Source: Tubulanus polymorphus (taxonomy: Eukaryota > Animalia > Nemertea). From it: DNA of 64,000 nt. The position numbers were made by a program, and so were the translations under genes. Shown piece after piece: positions 1 through 54,080 of this stretch. Within the stretch, counting starts at the first letter, position 1, and the number at the start of each line of letters is the position of its first letter. Under the pieces are notes generated by a model. The model was not told the DNA's origin. It was given only the letters and a program-made list of their open reading frames with translations, and searched no databases. The stretch spans positions 2,166,416 to 2,230,415 of the forward strand of contig NC_134032.1 in assembly GCF_964204645.1 (NCBI RefSeq), in the 5' to 3' direction.

Positions 1-235
1 TGAAATTGTGAAATCGATGTCATGAAGTAAAGGAGAATATTTAGACTGTGGTTAGCGATTTCAGTTCGTTTTCTTAACGACCCGCAGTTTGGGTTAATCG
101 TTACAATTACGACAAATAAAAAAAAATGGCAAAAAGATCGCCAACCTTGTGATATATAAAGTTATTCAGAAATATCGATGTTTCCAACAAATCTAGGCAT
201 CCAACCAAATTAACCCCAATCAGTCACATGCCGGT

Positions 236-2590: not shown

Positions 2591-4003
2591 ATGAAGCTAG
2601 TTAAAGACGATACAAGCCTCGTCGAAACGGACGAAATAGTTGGTAACGACGCCGAATACGGAGCTATCGTCAACCGGTCTTCTCGTACCGGTGACCAGTC
2701 CTGTCGCACCGGTGACCAGTCTAATAGTAGCGGTAACCAGTCCGATGACCGACTTAGTAAGAAGCCGTCGTCGTGTGGATGGTCTTATAACGTACGTCGC
2801 AAGGCGAGCCCTATAGTCATCGTGTCCATTGTCGGATTATCGGCGATGATTTTGAATACAGTCTCGGGAACGATTCTGACCGTCGGCGTCGATCTGCAAG
2901 ATGGATTCCGCAATAACTCGCCGAAAACCGATCGACACATCGCCAAAAATGTGGCGATTATCATAGCCACGTTCGACTCGGGACTGGTGCTAGGGAGCGT
3001 TTTCTGCGGCAGGCTGACGTTCAAATACGGCCACGTCTTCACATTCTGGTTCGGATTGGTAATCGGAATGGCGGCCGTGTCGATTTCCGCGTCCGCGACA
3101 GTTTGGTGGATGCTGGCAATTCTACACTTTTTGGTCGGTATTTCTCAGTCGTTTTTGCAGAACGCCGGTGCTACTATGGTGGCTATCGAATTCGAAAGCG
3201 TTCCGAGAAGGATTTCAGCGATGGCCGCCGTGAATAGTCTCTCGTACAGCGGCATCGGTTTCGGCTACGCGACCAGTCTATACGAAATACGACGGTTCGG
3301 TCGCGCGGTACCGTTTTGGATTCTGTTCGCGGCTCTGGTCGCGGTCGCGGCCATTCGCGCTCTCGTCAAAATAGACAACGCCGGCGCCGGTATTTCAGGC
3401 GATAAACCCATCCAACTGGACGTGATAAAATCGATGTTGACCGACGGACAAACGTTAGCGATATTCGGACTGAAATGTCTCTACATTTTCGTAAGCAACG
3501 TACAATTCGTGTTCGCTCCGTTGCTAATCGTCGAAAGGTCGCTAGACGCGCAGCACTGGCAGATAGCTACAGTCATGCTGGCGTCGGCAACGCTATTCCT
3601 TATTAGTACGAACATCTTCGGGATAATGGTGGCAAGAACTAGACGATACCGTTGGGTCCATTTTCTTGTTCATTGTTTGACGGGTGCGATCTCATTCGTG
3701 ACGTACCCGTTCATAAGCGACGTCTGGCACGCGCTCGGTCCCGATATTCTTTGCACATTGGCGATCGCTCTTTTGAATTGCTTCTATTTCTCCTGGCTTT
3801 CCGATGTGGCCGATAAGAAATTTGAAAGTAATTACGAGACTATGTACGCGATAGATGGCGCTGTGTCTCGTATTGTAGCGCTATTATTGATGTTAATAGT
3901 TGGGGCTGTACAACCATTTGTTGGATACTCGGCTATTTTCATAGGTGTCGGTATTATGGAATTCGTTTACTCTTTCGCCTCGCTTGCTGTGAGGGATATT
4001 TGA
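2591..4003 (+). CDS. Intronless MFS transporter, divergent SLC18A (VMAT/VAChT)-like, 470 aa
   Basis: First ATG is at 2591 (the ORF track starts at a GTG). About 12 hydrophobic segments. VMAT-like motifs: GRLTFKYG~GPLTNRIG, AGATMVA~AGMGMLA, FGRAVPF~VGKTAPF, WQIATVMLASATLFLISTNIFG~[29 protein letters not shown]~YGSVYAI. AATAAA at 4014-4019. Confidence 0.88.
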   Translation: MKLVKDDTSLVETDEIVGNDAEYGAIVNRSSRTGDQSCRTGDQSNSSGNQSDDRLSKKPSSCGWSYNVRRKASPIVIVSIVGLSAMILNTVSGTILTVGVDLQDGFRNNSPKTDRHIAKNVAIIIATFDSGLVLGSVFCGRLTFKYGHVFTFWFGLVIGMAAVSISASATVWWMLAILHFLVGISQSFLQNAGATMVAIEFESVPRRISAMAAVNSLSYSGIGFGYATSLYEIRRFGRAVPFWILFAALVAVAAIRALVKIDNAGAGISGDKPIQLDVIKSMLTDGQTLAIFGLKCLYIFVSNVQFVFAPLLIVERSLDAQHWQIATVMLASATLFLISTNIFGIMVARTRRYRWVHFLVHCLTGAISFVTYPFISDVWHALGPDILCTLAIALLNCFYFSWLSDVADKKFESNYETMYAIDGAVSRIVALLLMLIVGAVQPFVGYSAIFIGVGIMEFVYSFASLAVRDI

Positions 4004-15312: not shown

Positions 15313-16770
15313 GTCTAAGTTCGCGTTTGTTCTATATACGATCTAACAATTTCAGACCAGTCTCAGCTCATTTTGGTACTATAACCGATCCAACATTTTA
15401 AGACCAGTCTAAGCTCATTTTGGTTCTATAGCCAATCTAACAACTTAAGACCAGTCTAAGCTCATTTTAGTTCTATAACCGATCCAACATTTTAAGACCA
15501 GTCTAAGCTCATTTTGGTTCTATAACCAATCTATAACGACTTAAGACCAGTCTAAGCTCATTTTAGTTCTATAACCAATCTAACAATCTTAGACCAGTCT
15601 AAGCTCATTTTGGTTCTATAACCAATCTAACAACTTAAGACCAGTCTAAGCTCATTTTAGTTCTATAGACAATCTAACAATCTAAGACTAGTCTAAGCTC
15701 ATTTTGGTTCTATAGCCAATCTAACAACTTAAGACTAGTCTAAGCTCATTTTGGTTCTATAGCCAATCTAACAACTTAAGACCAGTCTAAGCTCATTTTA
15801 GTTCTATAGACAATCTAACAATCTAAGACTAGTCTAAGCTCATTTTGGTTCTATAGCCAATCTAACAACTTAAGACCAGTCTAAGCTCATTTTAGTTCTA
15901 TAGCCAATCTAACAATCTAAGACTAGTCTAAGCTCATTTTGGTTCTATAGCCAATCTAACAACTTAAGACCAGTCTAAGCTCATTTTAGTTCTATAGACA
16001 ATCTAACAATCTAAGACTAGTCTAAGCTCATTTTGGTTCTATAGCCAATCTAACAACTTAAGACCAGTCTAAGCTCATTTTAGTTCTATAACCAATCTAA
16101 CAACGTAAGACCGGTCTAAGCTCATTTTAGTTCTATAACCAATCTAACAACTTAAGACCAGTCTAAGCTTATTTTAGTTCTATAACCAATCTAACAACTT
16201 AAGACTAGTCTAAGCTCATTTTGGTTCTATAGCCAATCTAACAACTTAAGACCAGTCTAAGCTCATTTTAGTTCTATAACCAATCTAACAACTTAAGACC
16301 GGTCTAAGCTCATTTTAGGTCTATAACCAATCTAACAACTTAAGACCAGTCTAAGCTTATTTTAGTTCTATAACCAATCTAACTACTTAAGACAAGTCTA
16401 AGCTCATTTTAGTTCTATAACCAATCTAACAACTTAAGACTAGTCTAAGCTCATTTTGGTTCTGTAGCCAATCTAACTACTTACGACCAGTCTAAGCTCA
16501 TTTTGGTTCTATAACCAATCTAACAACTTAAGACCAGTCTAAGCTCATTTTAGTTCTATAGCCAATCTAGCAACTAAAGACCCGTCTAAGCTCATTTTGG
16601 TTCTGTAACCAATCTAACAACTTAAGACCAGTCTAAGCTCATTTTAGTTCTATAGCCAATCTAGCAACTTAAGACCAGTCTAAGCTAATTTTGGTTCTAT
16701 AGAAAATCTAACAACTTAAGACCAGTCTAAGCTCATTTTGGTTCTGTAACACCACGATCTAACGACTTTA
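15313..16770 (+). repeat. 47-bp minisatellite family A, largest array (about 31 units)
   Basis: Tandem units read directly. Confidence 0.97.
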
Positions 16771-26218: not shown

Positions 26219-27859
26219 GATGGCCTAACAGTGGAATTAAATCTAAAATGTCTTGTATCGTCAATAAACTATTTTATTTTCAGTATTTTATGTTATGATC
26301 GTATTTTGCTGTCGTGGTAAGATTCAGTATCGCGGTTTGGAGTTGTTATATCGGGATAAAGAGTTGTATTTGATAGGTGGAATTGTTGTACGTTGTAGCG
26401 ATCGACCTACGTCATTGTTATATACGAACGTGTCTTATAGAATATGTCCAACTTTTATGAAATAAATTCGGCCTCTTACAGAGAAGTTTCATTAAGTTGT
26501 GGTTCGTCTCTTGTGGTGGTTGACCTCAGTCGAAGGGATATATTCATATAATCTGGAGCTCACTAGACTATGCTCTTGTGTAAGTCTTTGAGAGAAGGAG
26601 AGGGTTGGAGATACCTCGCCCTAGACTCATGATGCTGTAGTGGAACCCCCTGGCAAACCACCACCAGGTTTTTTCTAGAACTGAACTTCCTTATTTAGTC
26701 TTCGAACTGGTAAGAATAAACTCCAGATACACCGCCTTTCTTTCTATACTAAGCTATTGGTTCATCTTCCAACCAAAGATATCTAAGTTGAAGCCCCGAA
26801 CAGGGTACACGTACACATATCATTGATTTGGCTCGACTTAAAATGTGTGTAAAAAGTTTCTTACTAATACAATGATCATTCCTGGCATTGGAGGATTTTA
26901 AAAACATTTATCAAACACTCCCAAAAACAGATTTCAAAGGAGCAGGAAATGTAATTTTATTTTTCAGATTCTAATAACGAATAGATTGATCAAAACGGAG
27001 CGAATAAGCGAAAGGAAGTTTGAAAGTGTCGTTTCATGGGGAGCAGGTATGTGCACCAGTGGTTCTAAGAATGAACACACCTTCCAAGACAGCGTCTTCG
27101 GAATCTGTCCAGCAATTCATCGGCCGTCAAATCCTTTTCTTTTGCCACAGTCATGGCCCACATAGACGCGAAAATCCCACAGAGGGGAAGCACGAGTGTG
27201 AACGACTCACCTAAAAATAGATATTCTTCGGTACCAGCTTCATAAACCTAGTCACAGATCCTGTATATTACACTACAAGCGCTACTTGATATATTAGAAA
27301 ATATTAGATTGATTTATGTCTAAAATTGATAAATGTGTGAATAACTTACTGATCATCGTAGATAATGTTTTAAACCCTGGAAAATATTTTCGAAGATATA
27401 TCGGGTTTAAAATGGAGGACTATGACATCCGAAGAAATATAGTAGTGAAAATCGTCACAAAACAGAAAACTGAAACTAGAAATATTCATAATTCATAATC
27501 AACTTACGTGTTCAGTAGAACTATCTGAATTCAGTTGTGAATCTAGTTTTGCCGCGGTCTAATATATAACACCAGCCAGACAGTTGTTTTTCATCGCGAT
27601 CTGGTAACTGAATATTACAATGTAAATTTACAGCGTGTTCGATTCAAGTGATCGATAGAAATTTGAAACCATTTTAGTCGAGTTGAACATTTCAGCAAAT
27701 TCAGCTGCGCTTTATCCTGGTTTACAGTCAGTAAATATCGTCCGTATGTTCTAACTAATAATGTCGCTACTGTGTTTTAACAAATTAATCTCGACTGAGC
27801 TAGAAACAGACCACGTTATGTGTTTTATAGTTAAACCTTTTATTTTGTGTGGTGTTAAA

Positions 27860-30800
27860 ATGACCAGTTCTCGGTTGGTTCACTGGGGCTCGAGTAATGA
27901 GCAGTTCTCGGTTGGTTCACTGGGACTCGAGTAATGATCAGTTCTCGGTTGGTTCACTGGGACTCGAGTAATGATCAGTTCTCGGTTGGTTCACTGGGAC
28001 TCGAGTAATGATCAGTTCTCGGTTGGTTCACTGGGACTCGAGTAATGATCAGTTCTCGGTTGGTTCACTGGGACTCGAGTAATGATCAGTTCTCGGTTGG
28101 TTCACTGGGAATCGAGTAATGATCAGTTCTCGGTTGGTTCACTGGGACTCGATTAATGATCAGTTCTCGGTTGGTTCACTGGGACTCGAGTAATGATCAG
28201 TTCTCGGTTGGTTCACTGGGACTCGAGTTATGATCAGTTCTCGGTTGGTTCACCGGGACTCGAGTAATGATCAGTTCTCGGTTGGTTCACTAGGACTCGG
28301 GTAATGATCAGTTCTCGGTTGGTTCACCGGGACTCGAGTAATGATCAGTTCTCGGTTGGTTCACCGGGACTCAAGTTATGATCAGTTCTCGGTTGGTTCA
28401 CCGGGACTCGAGTAATGATCAGTTCTCGGTTGGTTCACTAGGACTCGAGTAATGATCAGTTCTCGGTTGGTTCACTGAGACTCGATTAATGACCAGTTCT
28501 CGGTTGGTTCACTGGGACTCGAGTAATGATCAGTTCTCGGTTGGTTCACTGGGACTCGAGTAATGATCAGTTCTCGGTTGGTTCACTGGGACTCGAGTAA
28601 TGACCAGTTCTCGGTTGGTTCACTGGGACTTGAGTAATGATCAGTTCTCGGTTGGTTCACTAGGACTCGAGTAATACCAGTTCTCGGTTGGTTCACTGAA
28701 ACTCGAGTAATGATCAGTTCTCGGTTGGTTCACTGGGACTCGAGTAATGATCAGTTCTCGGTTGGTTCACTGGGACTCGAGTAATGATCAGTTCTCGGTT
28801 GGTTCACTGGGACTCGATTAATGACCAGTTCTCGGTTGGTTCACTGGGACTCGAGTAATGATCAGTTCTCGGTTGGTTCACTGAGACTCGAGTAATGATC
28901 AGTTCTCGGTTGGTTCACTGGGACTCGATTAATGACCAGTTCTCGGTTGGTTCACTGGGGCTCGAGTAATGACCAGTTCTCGGTTGGTTCACTGGGACTC
29001 GAGTAATGATCAGTTCTCGGTTGGTTCACTAGGACTCGATTAATGATCAGTTCTCCGTTGGTTCACTGAGGCTCGAGTAATGATCAGTTCTCGGTTGGTT
29101 CACTGGGACTCGAGTAATGATCAGTTCTCGGTTGGTTCACTGGTGCTCGAGTAATGACCAGTTCTCGGTTGGTTCACTGAGACTCGATTAATGACCAGTT
29201 CTCGGTTGGTTCACTGGGACTCGAGTAATGATCAGTTCTCGGTTGGTTCACTGAGACTCGATTAATGATCAGTTCTCGGTTGGTTCACTGGGACTCGAGT
29301 AATGACCAGTTCTCGGTTGGTTCACTAGGACTCGAGTAATGACCAGTTCTCGGTTGGTTCACTGAGACTCGATTAATGATCAGTTCTCGGTTGGTTCACT
29401 GGGACTCGAGTAATGATCAGTTCTCGGTTGGTTCACTGAGACTCGATTAATGATCAGTTCTCGGTTGGTTCACTGGGACTCGAGTAATGATCAGTTCTCG
29501 GTTGGTTCACTGGGACTCGATTAATGACCAGTTCTCGGTTGGTTCACTGGTGCTCGAGTAATGACCAGTTCTCGGTTGGTTCACTGAGACTCGATTAATG
29601 ACCAGTTCTCGGTTGGTTCACTGGGACTCGAGTAATGATCAGTTCTCGGTTGGTTCACTGGTGCTCGAGTAATGATCAGTTCTCGGTTGGTTCACTGAGA
29701 CTCGATTAATGATCAGTTCTCGGTTGGTTCACTGGGACTCGAGTAATGACCAGTTCTCGGTTGGTTCACTAGGACTCGAGTAATGACCAGTTCTCGGTTG
29801 GTTCACTGAGACTCGATTAATGATCAGTTCTCGGTTGGTTCACTGGGACTCGAGTAATGATCAGTTCTCGGTTGGTTCACTGAGACTCGATTAATGATCA
29901 GTTCTCGGTTGGTTCACTGGGACTCGAGTAATGATCAGTTCTCGGTTGGTTCACTGGGACTCGATTAATGACCAGTTCTCGGTTGGTTCACTGGTGCTCG
30001 AGTAATGACCAGTTCTCGGTTGGTTCATTGAGACTCGATTAATGACCAGTTCTCGGTTGGTTCACTGGGACTCGAGTAATGATCAGTTCTCGGTTGGTTC
30101 ACTGAGACTCGATTAATGATCAGTTCTCGGTTGGTTCACTAGGACTCGAGTAATGACCAGTTCTCGGTTGGTTCACTAGGACTCGAGTAATGACTTGTTC
30201 TCGGTTGGTTCACTGAGACTCGATTAATGATCAGTTCTCGGTTGGTTCACTGGGACTCGAGTAATGATCAGTTCTCGGTTGGTTCACTGAGACTCGATTA
30301 ATGATCAGTTCTCGGTTGGTTCACTGGGACTCGAGTAATGATCAGTTCTCGGTTGGTTCATTGGGACTCGAGTAATGATCAGTTCTCGGTTGATTCACTG
30401 GGACTCGAGTAATGATCAGTTCTCGGTTGGTTCATTGGGACTCGAGTAATGATCAGTTCTCGGTTGATTCACTGGGACTCGAGTAATGATCAGTTCTCGG
30501 TTGGTTCACTGGACTCGATTAATGATCAGTTCTCGGTTGGTTCACTGGGACTCGAGTAATGATCAGTTCTCGGTTGGTTCACTGGGACTCGATTAATGAT
30601 CAGTTCTCGGTTGGTTCACTGGGACTCGAGTAATGATCAGTTCTCGGTTGGTTCACTGGACTCGATTAATGATCAGTTCTCGGTTGGTTCACTGGGACTC
30701 GAGTAATGATCAGTTCTCGGTTGGTTCACTGGGACTCGAGTAATGATCAGTTCTCGGTTGGTTCACTGAGGCTCGAGTAATGACCAGTTCTCGGTTGGTT

Positions 30801-31957
30801 CACTGGGGCTCGAGTAATGACCAGTTCTCGGTTGGTTCACTGGGACTCGAGTAATGATCAGTTCTCGGTTGGTTCACTGGGGCTCGAGTAATGATCAGTT
30901 CTCGGTTGGTTCACTGGGACTCGAGTAATGACCAGTTCTCGGTTGGTTCACTGGGACTCGAGTAATGATCAGTTCTCGGTTGGTTCACTGGGACTCGAGT
31001 AATGATCAGTTCTCGGTTGGTTCACTGGGACTCGAGTAATGATCAGTTCTCGGTTGGTTCACTGGGACTCGAGTAATGATCAGTTCTCGGTTGGTTCACT
31101 GGGACTCGAGTAATGATCAGTTCTCGGTTGGTTCACTGGGACTCGAGGAATGATCAGTTCTCGGTTGGTTCACTGAGGCTCGAGTAATGACCAGTTCTCG
31201 GTTGGTTCACTGGGACTCGAGTAATGACCAGTTCTCGGTTGGTTCACTGGGACTCGAGTAATGATCAGTTCTCGGTTGGTTCACTGGGACTCGAGTAACG
31301 ATCAGTTCTCGGTTGGTTCACTGGGGCTCGAGTAATGATCAGTTCTCGGTTGGTTCACTGAGACTCGAGTAATGATCAGTTCTCGGTTGGTTCACTGGGA
31401 CTCGAGTAATGACCAGTTCCCGGTTGGTTCACTGAGACTCGAGTAATGATCAGTTCTCGGTTGGTTCACTGGGACTCGAGTAATGATCAGTTCTCGGTTG
31501 GTTCACTGAGACTCGAGTAATGATCAGTTCTCGGTTGGTTCACTGAGGCTCGAGTAATGATCAGTTCTCGGTTGGTTCACTGGGGCTCGAGTAATGATCA
31601 GTTCTCGGTTGGTTCACTGAGACTCGAGTAATGATCAGTTCTCGGTTGGTTCACTGGGGCTCGAGTAATGATCAGTTCTCGGTTGGTTCACTAGGACTCG
31701 AGTAATGATCAGTTCTCGGTTGGTTCACTGAGACTCGAGTAATGATCAGTTCTCGGTTGGTTCACTGAGACTCGAGTAATGATCAGTTCTCGGTTGGTTC
31801 ACTGGGACTCGATTAATGACCAGTTCTCGGTTGGTTCACTGGGGCTCGAGTAATGATCAGTTCTCGGTTGGTTCACTGGGACTCGAGTAATGACCAGTTC
31901 CCGGTTGGTTCACTGGGACTCGAGTAATGATCAGTTCTCGGTTGGTTCACTGGGACT
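27860..31957 (+). repeat. 37-bp satellite family E, about 4.1 kb, about 110 units
   Basis: Highly homogeneous CAGTTCTCGGTTGGTTCACTGGGACTCGAGTAATGAT units with no spacers. Confidence 0.99.
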
Positions 31958-33464: not shown

Positions 33465-34075
33465 TAAGGGATACGCTAAAAATCCCGTCATTTTTGGTAT
33501 TAGCTTCTTCATGCGCTCCGTGATTTTAAAGCTAATTTAATATGAATGAGCTCTAATTCACCTCGTGTCCTAATCTACCGAGTCTGATAATTATCGCTAG
33601 CGATTAAACACTTCTATAATGAATTCGTCCCGTACCGAGGCGCGGATGAGTAGTTTTATGAAGTGAGACGGGGAATATTAGCGCAACGACGCGAAGTGCC
33701 AAGCTGCCGATTCGCCATCCGTCGTTCCGTCGATCGGATTTGCATTTTAATGAACGCCGACACGTTACGCGGTGCGTTGAACGGTTTAAAGTAGCAGCGT
33801 CACGGAAACGCGGTGAAAAACGTAAAAACCACCGGGGGAAACGTTTGTAGTTTTTAAAGTCGACTCAAGAATTCAGTTTTTCTTCTCTTGCCCAGGATTA
33901 TGACAGTAGCTGAATATATACACAATTCCATCCGGAGCCACCCCATATTGGAAGGGTTGGCTCCTAATAAAATCAAATGTTCATTATTGTGCTATATACC
34001 ACGGTGACCATCGTGATTTCAGTCTAAAAACGGTCTCAAATCTTAAGTTTGTGTTTAAGACTGTGTAACTATATG

Positions 34076-34858
34076 TCTTAAGTTGTTAGATTGGCTATAG
34101 AACCAAAATCAGCTTAGATTGGTCTTAAGTTGTTAGATTGGTTATAGAACTAAAATGAGCTTAGATTGGTCTTAAGTTGTTAGATTGGTTATAGAACCAA
34201 AATGAGCTTAGATTGGTCTTAAGTTGCTAGATTGGCTATAGAACTAAAATGAGCTTAGACCGGTCTTAAGTTGTTAGATTGGCTATAGAACTAAAATGAG
34301 CTTAGATTGGTCTTAAGTTGTTAGATTGGTTATAGAACTAAAATGAGTTTAGACTGGTCTTAAGTTGTTAGATTGGTTATAGAACTAAAATGAGCTTAGA
34401 CCGGTCTTAAGTTGTTAGATTGGCTATAGAACTAAAATGAGCTTAGATTGGTCTCAAGTTGTTAGATTGGTAATAGAACTAAAATGAGCTTAGACTGGTC
34501 TTAAGTTGTTACATTTGCTATAGAACCAAAATCAGCTTAGATTCGTCTTAAGTTGTTAGATTGGCTATAGAACTAAAATGAGCTTAGACTAGTCTTAAGT
34601 TGTTAGATTGGTTATAGAACCAAAATGAGCTTAGACTGGTGTTAAGTTGTTAGATTGGTTATGGAACCAAAATGAGTTTAGACTGGTCTTTTGAAGTTGT
34701 TAGATTGGCTATAGAACTAAAATGTGCTTAGACTGGTCTTAAGTTGTTAGATTGGTTATGGAACCAAAATGAGCTTAGACTGGTCTTTCAAAGTTGTTAG
34801 ATTGTTTAAATATGACTAAAATGACCTTAGGTCATACGTAAGTTGTTAAATTGGCTAC
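34076..34858 (-). repeat. 47-bp minisatellite family A, about 16 units
   Basis: Reverse-oriented units. Confidence 0.95.
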
Positions 34859-40718: not shown

Positions 40719-41413
40719 ATGCTGGGATTTACGTAATCTAAGGTTAAAGTGTAATCTAGTTTGGCAAATAGAGGCCGCGAACAATCTCGACCGTAGTTCA
40801 GGCAGTACGTTCCACCTGCACCAGCCGTCTCGCGAACCGTCACTGATGTCATCGTCCATTTAATATTATGTTACGATTACGACGAGAAATTCTAACCGGC
40901 GCGGATGAGTTTATAGTTTTATAGTTTTACGACCCGTTTTGTCGGGCGGCCCCCCGTGGTCCGCAGCTGTTGACGGGCGACGAGACCGATTCAACCGGTC
41001 ACGTTCGCTCCACTCCCAGGTGGGCGGCAGGGTATAGATGCCGGTGCATGTCCTGTGAATTCCCAGGCATCCTTCATTCGGCTACCGCTAGCTAGCTGAA
41101 ATGTGATAAAAAGTGTTGAAATGTGTTAATCGTGGCCCAATGCCACCATCAGCTATGCCGCTAGTTGATGTCCTGCAGCAGCTATCCCGCTAGATGGCGT
41201 GCGTATCAACAGATAAAAAAATCGATCAAAATTCGCTTTCAATGAACTTGATTTTTTAGCCATCCACATCGGAAATAAGGCAAAAAGAATCTCTGATAAA
41301 CTCAGATTAATGTTTACGGTTCAAACATAGCACGGATTTTTATAATAGAATTTTAGAAATTATGATAGATTTTATTTGAATCTGCAAAAAACCGGCATCG
41401 TTGTCATACCGCT

Positions 41414-41896
41414 CACTAGCGACACCTGGTGGGTCCCCACTTACAAGCGGAATCCTCCATTGCCGCAGCAGCTAATGTCCTCACGATAGGTAGAACACAA
41501 TATCCGTGTTGACGCGATGAGGAGAGAATCCCACAATGATAATAAAAAGTGTAACTGTTTCTACGTTAATTTTCCTTTAGGTTGTATCATCTCTGATTAC
41601 TTGAATTAGTCTCTTTGTCTCTGGATTGTATATATATCTCATAATTTCTGTAGTATCTCATTATTCCTGAAGATGACTATTAGGATATAGTCGAAACGTT
41701 GAAATAAACTACTATCTCGAAGTTTCATTTTCGGACTTTTTATTATCATTGTGGGATTCTCTCCTCAGCTAATGTCCTACTCCACACTAGCGACACCTGG
41801 TGGATCCTCACTTGCCACAAGTCGAATCCTCTATTGCCGCAGTAGTTGATGTCCTACCACACACTAGCGACACCTGTTGGGTCCTCACTTGCCACG
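41414..41896 (+). repeat. About 75-bp tandem repeat (about 2.5 units) interrupted by the hammerhead insertion
   Basis: CACTAGCGACACCTG(G/T)TGG occurs three times; related sequence at 24765-24820. Confidence 0.8.
41482..41767 (+). mobile_element. Penelope-type/retrozyme-like insertion with an intact minimal hammerhead (41661-41707)
   Basis: TTATTC-CTGAAGA-T-GACTAT-taggat-ATAGTC-GAAA-CGT-T-GAAATAA. 33-bp perfect inverted repeat (41518-41550 / 41735-41767). 11-bp TSD GCTAATGTCCT (41471-41481 / 41768-41778). Confidence 0.85.
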
Positions 41897-42254
41897 ATTG
41901 TCGCAGTCCAACGTGGAGTCCTAAATGGTGATTAGAATTACTAAGGGACCTTAATAGAAAAATGAGTCAGTTGGAATGATATACCATTGCAAAGTTTATA
42001 CGGGCCCAAATATGGTCGCGAAATGTTTTACGGCTTGTATTGTCACGAATATTGTCAATCGTTGTATTAATTGTCCGCTAAAACAAATCTTAAAAAACGC
42101 CTCCTCGTGTAAAAAAAAAACCGCTGCGTGCGGTCAAAATGTGGGTTACTTTCCGGTAACGGAAGTACAATATTGACTCGTCCGTACTCGACCAATCAGC
42201 GCGCTTCGAAATAAAATCGATAAATTCGACGTCTCTTTGTGTGGAATGTATAAT

Positions 42255-49150: not shown

Positions 49151-50652
49151 TTTTGAACTTTTTAAAACTATTTGCGGATTCAATTCGTAATAGTAACTGT
49201 GTCCATGGGTTTCTGCACAACTGGGAATCGGACAACTGGAACAAATACGCAGATATCGAGGGCGATGTATCATTACTGTTTATCTTCAACCTCCTTGAAA
49301 TATATATATAAACGAAATATCATTTTCTCGATAAAGAATCCACGCGGGTTAAAGATTATTACTCGAATCGGAAAGAGCTACGCCTAATTAAACCGACAGG
49401 TCGTCGAATTGTTGATATCGAATTTAACGTAACTTATAGCTTAAAGAAATAAACAAAACCCAGCGATTTGACGAGTGAGGCGATATAGGATAGGTCTTAT
49501 TCGATCGATTTCCATCGTATCCCTATAACAATAACCCATATCGGCGCGATGGCGAACCGACGTAGGTTGTTATATAGGCTGTTATTTCAGATTACCGGAG
49601 AATAGTAAAAATAAACAGTTTGTTTATCACGAAGCGGAACAACACTGGCGCGAATGGAGCGTGTGCCAGTGAATGGCTTGACACGGGCCATATTGCGCCG
49701 AAACCCGCACCAGAAAGGCGTGAAAATGAACGCAATGTTTTTCGAAGGCGCTTAATGATTAGAACTCTTTTTGCCGGAGAAAAACTAAACCATTATCCAT
49801 GCTGGAAGGCTCGGCATTTTCTACCTTGGAATAGGGATGATTTCCCGCTTGCCGGTATATATTCATGACAAATGATTTGATTTCCACATAGTTTTGGTTC
49901 TGTCCCTTACAAACCCACCAGATTTCCGATTTCACAATCAAACCCCCTGTTTCGCTCCCGGCAGGTATGGTGCGTTTGTATAAGGGACAGCGAATTAAAA
50001 CAAATCAAACGAAATCTACCAATCGAATAAATTACAGGGTCAATCCCTATTTCAAGATTAAGAAAACGTGAAAATTTTGAAGGGTTAAGATCATAGCCCA
50101 TTTACATAAGTTTTTTTTTTTAATTATTGGAACATCATGAATAAGTTTAGTTCATCTTCAATGGTTAACCCAGGCTGCTGCTGCTGCTGCCGCTGCTGTT
50201 TCTGCTGCAACTGCTGCCGCTGACGCTGCAGTTCAAGGCATTGATAAGAACCACACGCGCCAGATCAGCGCGGATATCGTATTTTGATACAGGTAGTTTG
50301 AACAATGCGGGTGTTGCGTGTCACGCACGATACGCGCGCGTACTCCGATCTACTGTTTATAGAAAACCGCTGAAATTACAGTTACAACTTCTTGTGAGGG
50401 TAGAGACAGGAGACACCTGTTCCAGCGATACTGTAACAACTTACTTACAGCTCGCACTGAGACTGGATCGCGGCTGCTATTGTATTACTGTTTTCATAGC
50501 GTTATCAGCTAAATATCGATCTATAGTATTTTGATGAAAGGCAGACGTTGTGTTCGCGACCCGTGTATCTACAATGTGGTGCTTTTAATGAAATGAATGG
50601 AATTGTTTTGTACAACGAATATTTCATATCAAACAAAACTGATATAATCATA

Positions 50653-51397
50653 TTTGACTCTAGATCCAGTTGCACAGTTGTGTGGGTTTAATTTGACTCT
50701 GGATCCAGTTGCACAGTTGTGTGGGTTCAATTTGACCCTGAACCCAGTTCCACAGTTGCGTGGGTTTAATTTGACTCTGGATCCAGTTCCACAGTTGCGT
50801 GGGTTTAATTTGAATCTAGGTCCAGTTCCACAGTTGTGTAGGTTTAATTTGACCCTGAATCCAGTTCCACAGTTGTGTGGGTTTAATTTGACTCTGGATC
50901 CAGTTCCACAGTTGCGTGGGTTTAATTTGACTCTAGATCCAGTTGCACAGTTGTGTGGGTTTAATTTGACTTTGGATCCAGTTGCACAGTTGTGTGGGTT
51001 CAATTTGACCCTGAACCTAGTTCCACAGTTGCGTGGGTTTAATTTGACTCTGGATCCAGTTCCACAGTTGCGTGGGTTTAATTTGAATCTAGGTCCAGTT
51101 CCACAGTTGTGTAGGTTTAATTTGACCCTGAATCCAGTTCCACAGTTGTGTGGGTTTAATTTGACTCTGGATCCAGTTCCACAGTTGCGTGGGTTTAATT
51201 TGAATCTAGGTCCAGTTCCACAGTTGTGTGGGTTTAATTTGACCCTGAATCCAGTTCCACAGTTGTGTGGGTTTAATTTGAATCTAGGTCCAGTTCCACA
51301 GTTGTGTAGGTTTAATTTGACCCTGAACCCAGTTCCACAGTTGTGTGGGTTTTAATTTGACTCTGGACCCAGTTCCACAGTTGTGCGGGTTTAATTC
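50653..51397 (+). repeat. 39-bp family B array, about 19 units
   Basis: Tandem units; accounts for the 233-aa repetitive ORF. Confidence 0.96.
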
Positions 51398-52806
51398 GAT
51401 TTTTTTTTTGATGCCTCAGAACCGATACTTGCATTTAAGGCAAACTCGGAGGATGTATTATGATAATCCTGCCTAAGTACCTGTATGTAAACCGACTCGC
51501 GGTGTCTAGTACTATAGCAACAGCTGATCGCTGCGCGGTCGAGTTACGGGACTGTCGATATCAACACCAGTAAATCGATACAATTTTCTAGTAATTGCCG
51601 TGACAAAATTGACACTCGACGCAAAACCGCCAAGAACGTGTTTGAACTCGAAATTTTCACGATCATCTCGATATATTCTCAAGTAAAAGGGCTGCTTTTA
51701 GACGAAGTTACGGAATTTTGAAAAAAATGCACCGTCTTGTAAAAACGTGTTGGACGCAAACAACTCGGTGAAAAATATTTAAAAAAAAGCTTTCTGATTA
51801 GTATCGCGTGAAAAACGTCCAGAGATATAAAATGTATATGAAAATTGACGACATTGATGTTTTCGTGTTCAAAAGGCCAACAGAAATCCTAATCAGTGGT
51901 TTACCGGTTCAGGCTATATGGACGGAATATTAGTTGATCTTGAATGAACTGGTTCCGAAAATTTCAATTATCTATACTTCCAAATAATTAAATTTGACCG
52001 ATGACCAACCAGTTTTATCCGTACTTCGATTTCCGATTTCAAAATCAATCAACCCCCTGTTTCGTTCCCGGCAGGGACTCAATAGATAGCTAGAAATGAA
52101 ATTGGTTAAAATACATGAGAAGGAAAACGATCCCTATATCGAGATGGAAGAAAAAAAGATGATGTCAATGTCCCCAAAAATAAATAATTTTTTGAGGCTC
52201 AACATTTTAGTACTTTGGACGACTAATTGACCTAAGATTGCTGAGTCACAGATGCATGCAGTCTTGGATTATCTAAGACCGATAAGTAAATAAACATATT
52301 CAACATGCGTTTTAAACCGAAGTCAAAATCAAGCCCATATAACACTGTTCTAATGCGATCGATTACAGTTCTCGCGTTCAGAACCAGGGTCGAATCAGAC
52401 CTTATTAAAACGACGAATACAAGCAGTGTGAGTATATCGATACTAGACGATGGAGGCTTCCTCGTTCGCGGAGGACCATTGAAATTTGTTTAGGTCTATT
52501 ATTCTGACCCGACGTATAATAATATAAACAGGTCGATTTATGCAGGTATAATCCATGGTCCATTCAACCTGATAAAAGCTATTGTCGACGAGTGGATGGT
52601 TTTATCGTTATAACCGCTTTGTTTGTGGCCTCCAATTTCGATGTGAAATCGTTTTTGATAATCGCTATTTTATAATCGGCTACCTGCAACTAAAAAGCTT
52701 CCTGGTACTGTGAATTTGGCTTCAAACTAGCAAAATAGCCGTGATCGAATTTTGCCCGGAACGCCTCCAAATATGTCTTTTCGATGACCAAAAATTCTAG
52801 GTCCAA

Positions 52807-53230
52807 GTCGAAACGTTGAATAAACTACACTAGCTCAAGGAAACATTTTAGACTCTTTTTATTCTTAGTGTGCAGGGATTTTATATTGTCTTTACAACAC
52901 GAACTCAGAGTGTTTCATCAATGGTTATAATGAGGACAACATCAGCATTCCTGAAGATGACTATTAGGATATAGTCGAAACGTTGAATAAACTACACTAG
53001 CTCAAGGAAACATTTCATACTCTTTTTATTCTTAGTGTGCAGGGATTTTATATTATCTTTACAACACGGGCTCAGAGTGTTTCATCAATGGTTATAATGA
53101 GGACAACATCAGTATTCCTGAAGGCGACTACTAGGATAAACGTTGAATAAACAATATATCAAGCAAACATTTCGGACCCTTTTTTATTCTGCAGGGATTT
53201 TACAACACGAACTCAGATTGTTTCATCAAT
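52807..53230 (+). mobile_element. Retrozyme-like tandem array: 167-bp monomers with hammerhead motifs at the junctions
   Basis: GTCGAAACGTTGAATAAAC at 52807 and 52974. Intact hammerhead at 52947-52988, internally deleted copy at about 53114-53148, 3' half only at 52807-52821. Confidence 0.85.
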
Positions 53231-54008: not shown

Positions 54009-54080
54009 GGCTCGGTGGCCAAGTGGTAAGGCGTCGGTCTCGTAAACCGAAGATCCCGGGTTCGACCCCCGGCCGGGCCT
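54009..54080 (+). tRNA. tRNA-Thr-CGT: tRNA-Thr (anticodon CGT)
   Basis: 72-nt cloverleaf: acceptor GGCTCGG/CCGGGCC, anticodon stem TCGGT/ACCGA, CGT at 54041-54043, T-arm CCGGG-TTCGACC-CCCGG. Pol III terminator TTTTT at 54084-54088. Confidence 0.96.

Follow-up and report, generated by a model that had tools for sequence, protein, structure and literature searches.

A 286-bp fold-back insertion in a satellite unit of Tubulanus polymorphus: likely origin by target-primed reverse transcription from an active Penelope-like element

Insertions of endonuclease-positive Penelope-like elements (EN+ PLEs) typically show an inverted 5'-truncated copy together with a tail of 30–40 bp at one end (PMC8557442). 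The purified PLE protein of the lizard Anolis carolinensis cleaves and extends both strands of its target, and reverse transcription starts from two adjacent internal sites, the tail being the sequence between them; the start sites used on the two strands were no different (PMC11167929). Minimal hammerhead ribozymes published for PLEs cleave poorly and only as dimers (PMC4209133), and it was proposed that animal retrozymes derive from the pseudo-LTRs (pLTRs) of PLEs (bioRxiv 10.64898/2026.07.22.740005).

Here we analyze a 286-bp insertion in a stretch of 64,000 nucleotides from the nemertean Tubulanus polymorphus (NC_134032.1, positions 2,166,416 to 2,230,415; hereafter the window). It is highly likely that an active PLE of this genome generated this insertion recently, by target-primed reverse transcription, and left a non-functional copy. 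Like EN+ PLEs such as Penelope/Poseidon, Neptune and Nematis, its family has partial-tandem pLTRs and frequent 5' truncation, and the insertion shares with them the upstream inverted 5'-truncated copy, the tail at one end (30–40 bp in EN+ PLEs, 36 bp here) and the hammerhead in the pLTR, whereas the window holds a 286-bp fragment only and not a whole element (PMC8557442). In comparison to Poseidon PAc from Anolis carolinensis studied in vitro, both strands were apparently primed here as well, judging from the sequence, and there are again two adjacent internal start sites with the stretch between them forming the tail. In contrast, the start sites of PAc are located 111–118 bp inside the ORF and its hammerhead cut lies 26 bp after the ATG, while both start sites used here are upstream of the ATG (PMC11167929). 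The minimal hammerheads of metazoan PLEs (Cervera and de la Pena, 2014, PMC4209133) have traits in common with the hammerhead of the insertion, which together suggest that it acts as a dimer.

Two further systems invite comparison. In the 5'-inversion of L1 elements by twin priming, an inverted upstream piece is likewise followed by a direct downstream piece, with microhomology at the joint and a single target duplication. However, the L1 pieces stem from different, adjacent parts of one RNA, whereas here both pieces start 36 nt apart in the 3' region and overlap, which results in an inverted repeat. Non-LTR (metazoan) retrozymes are resembled by a second locus in the window, a 167-bp tandem array of short units without ORF, each of which carries a type-I hammerhead and is apparently derived from a PLE pLTR. 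Unlike these retrozymes, the 286-bp insertion is single and non-tandem and carries the 3'UTR of a PLE.

The insertion, its target and its parent element

The preliminary description of the window had reported a 286-bp insertion with an 11-bp target-site duplication and a 33-nt fold-back in a minisatellite unit, and direct reading together with the repeat finder confirmed this structure (Table 1). The two duplications match at 11 of 11 positions, and a shared CA in front of them permits a reading of up to 13 nt. The arms of the inverted repeat comprise 33 nt each, are 100% complementary and enclose 184 nt, and the left arm is separated from the left duplication by a stretch of 36 nt. In silico deletion of the insertion and one duplicate produced a junction that reads through one normal 77-bp unit, matches uninterrupted paralogous units at 44 of 48 positions (L077:1482) and also matches the neighbouring unit of the window at 41830. 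An allelic empty site was sought in the genome assembly with both flanks and none was found, each flank being 100% identical only to itself; the same searches also returned hundreds of paralogous 77-bp units. Since the assembly contains no empty allele, we infer the state before insertion from these paralogous units.

Table 1. Positions of the insertion, its parts and related features in the window
Feature	Position	Strand	Basis
Target, about three 77-bp satellite units, one of them split by the insertion	41396-41920	+	repeat finder
Left target-site duplication, GCTAATGTCCT	41471-41481		direct reading
Insertion, 286 bp	41482-41767		direct reading and repeat finder
PLE tail, unit 1-36, reverse complement	41482-41517	-	BLAST; arm followed by these 36 nt in the parent
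Left arm, unit 2825-2857, inverted	41518-41550	-	BLAST and repeat finder
Direct 5'-truncated copy, unit 2640-2857 (3'UTR/pLTR end), tail-less	41549-41767	+	BLAST
Minimal type-I hammerhead	41661-41707	+	core read by hand and covariation
Right arm, final 33 nt of the unit, up to the first start site of reverse transcription	41735-41767	+	BLAST and repeat finder
Right target-site duplication, GCTAATGTCCT	41768-41778		direct reading
167-bp tandem array, units homologous to PLE unit 2749 to 42	52806-53138	+	repeat finder, alignment

As a dispersed satellite, the 77-bp target repeat has many loci on the contigs C6, C9 and C10 (at least 190 matches listed), and it also forms long arrays, e.g. at G000:C6:22208400-22209100 and C9:3985076-3985874. 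The window itself is rich in minisatellite arrays with units of 37, 39, 44 and 47 bp, which appear repeatedly and in either orientation (15329-16750, 27859-31957, 34075-34830, 50652-51396 and others), the largest of which consists of 111 copies of a 37-mer. These minisatellites may represent internal arrays of other mobile elements.

The parent of the insertion is an autonomous PLE with a unit of 2857 bp, for which we used L048:1998-4854 as reference. Its 800-aa ORF (L048:2037-4439) contains a reverse transcriptase domain (Pfam RVT_1, 5.8e-10) and, at the C-terminus, a GIY-YIG domain (1.5e-5), and a DKG motif ahead of the RT is visible in the translation. The usual layout of the parent is a partial tandem, in which a 5'-truncated unit is followed by a full unit and 36 extra nucleotides, as in the map of L048, [1261-2857][1-2857][1-37]; this partial-tandem pLTR structure was observed with target duplications in both L048 and L049. 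The combination of RT and C-terminal GIY-YIG in one ORF, partial-tandem pseudo-LTRs and a hammerhead in the pLTR identifies the parent as an endonuclease-positive PLE (PMC8557442; PMC4209133). The linker motif CX2-5CxxC was not seen by eye in the parent sequence, which would point to the Penelope/Poseidon type. At least 12 copies contain an open frame of 833 aa with 97–98% identity to a 224-aa query, and the parent family is apparently very young and active. Truncation points differed at every fetched locus, and the simple 5'-truncated copies among these loci end either at unit positions 2855-2857 (seven cases) or at the tail (11 cases).

Besides the parent family, at least three further PLE families are present (L051, L055, L056, L058), with 45–58% protein identity in their N-terminal parts. 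A composite 2.87-kb PLE insertion, consisting of an inverted, internally deleted copy and a fold-back copy flanked by the duplication AGAAATGATAT, was found at L031:1475-4348 (G000:C20) and L032 (G000:C2:12572987-12575860). It interrupts an ORF for a family-B DNA polymerase (Pfam DNA_pol_B_2, E 8e-6, just under the curated cut-off) that is possibly part of a Maverick/Polinton. Since the composite structure is identical on C2 and C20, the 156-kb contig C20 may represent a haplotig or duplicated sequence.

When the parent unit was compared to the window by BLAST, the insertion resolved into three segments, [-1..37][-2825..2857][+2640..2857]. Tail and left arm together constitute a 69-nt inverted 5'-truncated copy of the parent 3' end that ends at unit position 36, while the direct copy of 218 nt ends at unit position 2857. 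Hence the insertion consists of two 5'-truncated copies arranged head to head, with a 2-nt GT overlap as inner junction, and the 33-bp fold-back is only the overlap that both copies have in common. The piece that had been described as an inverted repetition of the terminal 33 nt of the insertion is in fact this second, 69-nt copy, whose starting point on the template lies 36 nt 3' of that of the direct copy. In a search of the 268-Mb genome, at least 35 copies were 100% identical to the insertion over 219 nt, covering query positions 68-286 only. At many of these loci, query positions 1-69 occur in inverted orientation immediately 3' of the arm, indicating that the supposed short filler is the reverse complement of the parent sequence following the arm, namely of the 36-nt PLE tail. 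The inner junction had only a single match in the genome when up to two mismatches were allowed, which indicates a structure formed at this very site and not a family that propagates.

The uniqueness of the junction also bears on the initial view that the insertion is a distinct non-autonomous element, in the sense of a dedicated retrozyme- or SINE-like element that borrows the 3' module of a PLE and is mobilised in trans. The insertion does lack an ORF, a hammerhead-bearing 167-bp array with the same 41-mer is located 11 kb away, and the proposed descent of animal retrozymes from PLEs (bioRxiv 10.64898/2026.07.22.740005) would fit such an origin. However, the direct part matches the 3'UTR of the autonomous element collinearly over all of its 218 nt, 118 of which precede the ribozyme, with an identity of up to 100%, the structure was found in no other copy, and the 167-bp units are devoid of the upstream body. 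We consider a dedicated non-autonomous element very improbable and replace the initial view with that of a severely 5'-truncated autonomous PLE, given the 100% identity over 219 nt to so many genomic copies.

Fold-back architecture across the family

An inverted 5'-truncated copy on the upstream side was observed in the window and at L002, L005, L050, L004, L019, L021, L031 and L047. Among the fetched loci, the tail is restricted to a single end in each of the ten complete inverted-type insertions, the target duplications of which comprise 12–15 nt including the microhomology at the junction. The arms measure 33, 44, 58, 199 nt or more, depending on the copy, and the length of 33 nt is specific to the window copy.

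A perfect inverted repeat and target duplications of roughly constant size throughout the family (about 11–13 bp) could also be taken as signs of a DNA transposon or MITE whose terminal inverted repeats have 33 bp. Against this speak the 36 nt between left arm and duplication, the arm length that is different at every locus, the uniqueness of the structure in the genome and the derivation of the sequence from the 3' terminus of an element that encodes RT and GIY-YIG and is variably truncated on its 5' side. The reading as DNA transposon or MITE is thus effectively refuted and retains hardly any probability. The variable arms and the left arm that does not abut the duplication bear out the preliminary conclusion that the insertion was RNA-mediated and of Penelope type, and not a DNA MITE. 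An ORF with RT and GIY-YIG domains whose terminal repeat includes the 41-mer spanning the ribozyme was indeed found, with many intact copies.

At the scale of the genome, the junction between arm and tail occurs 326 times. On C1 and C2, 12 (-,+) pairs of hammerheads lie close together; a single exact arm–tail junction was present in 11 of them, and two such junctions in none. Among the first 100 hammerhead matches, close pairs were oriented (-,+) in about 18 cases versus (+,-) in one case, so that the 5' ends meet in the middle. Both sets of counts were obtained by hand reading of coordinate lists. Taken together, about 21 of 22 fold-back insertions carry one tail, and tails on both ends were seen in none of them. 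The idea that the tail-bearing copy is always the shorter one was rejected because L019, L021 and L047 are counter-examples, and consequently a simple model with two enzymes acting on one RNA is unsupported.

The longer fold-back insertions of the family (L005, L050, L021) raise the question whether the window copy was initially longer as well and was shortened later by an internal deletion, with the GT junction as deletion scar. The same end structure would result from such an event, and a microhomology of 2 nt is also compatible with end-joining. On the other hand, arms (33/33) and duplication (11/11) match perfectly and the piece is 100% identical to many other copies, leaving little time for a second event. 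Moreover, equally short joints are found in many other copies, namely in the close (-,+) pairs, as expected if short cDNAs are common primary products. We therefore regard a later deletion as improbable and favor the primary insertion of two short cDNAs.

The near-strict occurrence of a single tail is not predicted by independent choice of the start site on each strand and thus counts against the explanation that we consider best. A possible but rather doubtful solution would be that the two priming events are coupled, e.g. in a dimeric RNP with one protomer for each start site.

The hammerhead motif and the 167-bp array

In the minimal type-I hammerhead of the insertion, helix I would be formed by 41661-66 with 41701-07 and is followed by the core CUGAAGA (41667-73) and a bulged U before G10.1. 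Helix II has 6 bp (GACUAU/AUAGUC), and GAA, a loopless palindromic ACGU, U17 and the second strand of helix I complete the motif, with a predicted cut after 41700. All elements of the catalytic core, C3-A9, G12-A14, A15.1/U16.1 and H17, are present. Three further PLE families carry the motif in the corresponding position, about 140 nt before the ATG, and its helices differ among them by compensatory changes. In an alignment of eight sequences, representing four PLE families plus the satellite, core columns, bulged U and the loop UAG are invariant, eight of ten helix pairs change on both sides and 98.8% of the cells are paired, compared to 22–41% in a control with slid partner columns. As this set holds only about four independent lineages, the support that covariation lends to the predicted helices is good but not overwhelming.

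Searches with the Rfam hammerhead models gave no match at gathering score in the whole window and none at E<=10 in 41400-41850, which is expected for a minimal PLE type that lacks the hairpin of helix III. The earlier claim of an intact hammerhead is accordingly upheld by the manually read core and by covariation, but not by Rfam. No hammerhead was accepted with the strict pattern upstream of L054, L057, L059-L064 and L066; the pattern match at L062 has a 26-nt spacer followed by GAAAAG, shows neither helix II pairing nor ACGU and was rejected.

The 34-nt core of the motif has 1031 exact copies in the genome versus none for a reversed control, and exactly two copies in the window versus none in 100 shuffles. 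In the variant present in the insertion, helix I is bulged by an additional A in its 3' strand, and this variant is nevertheless the most frequent one (545 exact copies), in line with the observation that ribozyme mutants did not impair insertion in vitro (PMC11167929). A single minimal motif that lacks helix III probably does not cleave itself, and the hammerhead in the insertion is a passenger that came along as part of the pLTR.

The second hammerhead-bearing locus of the window, the 167-bp array, contains the 41 nt at 41663-41703 in identical form at 52947-52987, as determined by direct reading. Each array unit extends from 9 nt before the ribozyme core through hammerhead, arm and tail to the ATG. 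Alignment with the PLE gave 74% identity over 160 columns, with 100% in the ribozyme and about 62% elsewhere, so that the ribozyme is indeed much better conserved than its flanks, as had been proposed. The additional proposals of upstream bodies without relationship and of an exchangeable ribozyme module fared less well. The former is only partly true, because homology between the 167-bp unit and the parent extends over about 150 nt on the downstream side of the ribozyme, and the latter is better replaced by common descent, with the 167-bp repeat corresponding to PLE unit 2749 to 42 minus the ORF. From its sequence, the array is best described as a deletion derivative of the same PLE region that has neither ORF nor 3'UTR, and it looks like a retrozyme-type derivative of the PLE. 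A related 167-bp array is also present at L067 (G000:C8:2249000-2250400). About 0.9 kb downstream of the array in the window, a tRNA gene was detected at 54009-54080 (Rfam, 67 bits), the anticodon loop of which, read from the alignment, looks like CGU (Thr).

Proposed order of events and implications

The map onto the parent unit, the RT + GIY-YIG ORF of the parent, the end structures throughout the family and the target duplications are directly visible in the DNA. Based on the published biochemistry of the Anolis PLE, we infer priming on both strands and the following order of events. The GIY-YIG endonuclease would make a staggered double-strand break in a 77-bp satellite unit, with the two cuts about 11 nt apart. 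The 3'-OH of the bottom strand would then prime reverse transcription at the first internal start site, unit position 2857 (...CTCCTCA), possibly assisted by a CA microhomology with the target, and the resulting cDNA of 218 nt would extend through the hammerhead into the 3'UTR. The 3'-OH of the top strand would prime at the second start site, unit position 36 (...CTATCGTG), which is located 36 nt further 3' and 3 nt before the ATG, in this case without microhomology, and would yield a cDNA of only 69 nt. Joining of the two short cDNAs at the GT microhomology and fill-in of the gaps would complete the insertion and generate the target duplication. Such a sequence of events would account for both peculiarities of the structure, the inverted repeat because both cDNAs copied the same 33 nt, and the tail at one end only because two different start sites were used.

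The two start sites follow the predicted ribozyme cut at distances of only 66 and 102 nt. Being so near to the cut, they would allow only very short cDNAs to be copied from a linear monomer processed by the ribozyme, and longer copies of the family would presumably need read-through multimers or circular templates.

By itself, the insertion is ordinary, one dead-on-arrival retrotransposon copy of a well-described kind. Its annotated family, in contrast, accounts for more than 1000 hammerhead motifs that are undetected by Rfam in this 268-Mb genome. The junctions provide clean in vivo examples that agree with the model of two start sites and two strands, which so far comes from one in vitro system. 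The link between the 167-bp satellite and the PLE supports, in this genome, the view that animal retrozymes are deletion derivatives of PLEs. Should the two priming events indeed be coupled, the at least 1000 hammerhead-bearing copies of the family would constitute a natural data set for dissecting that step.
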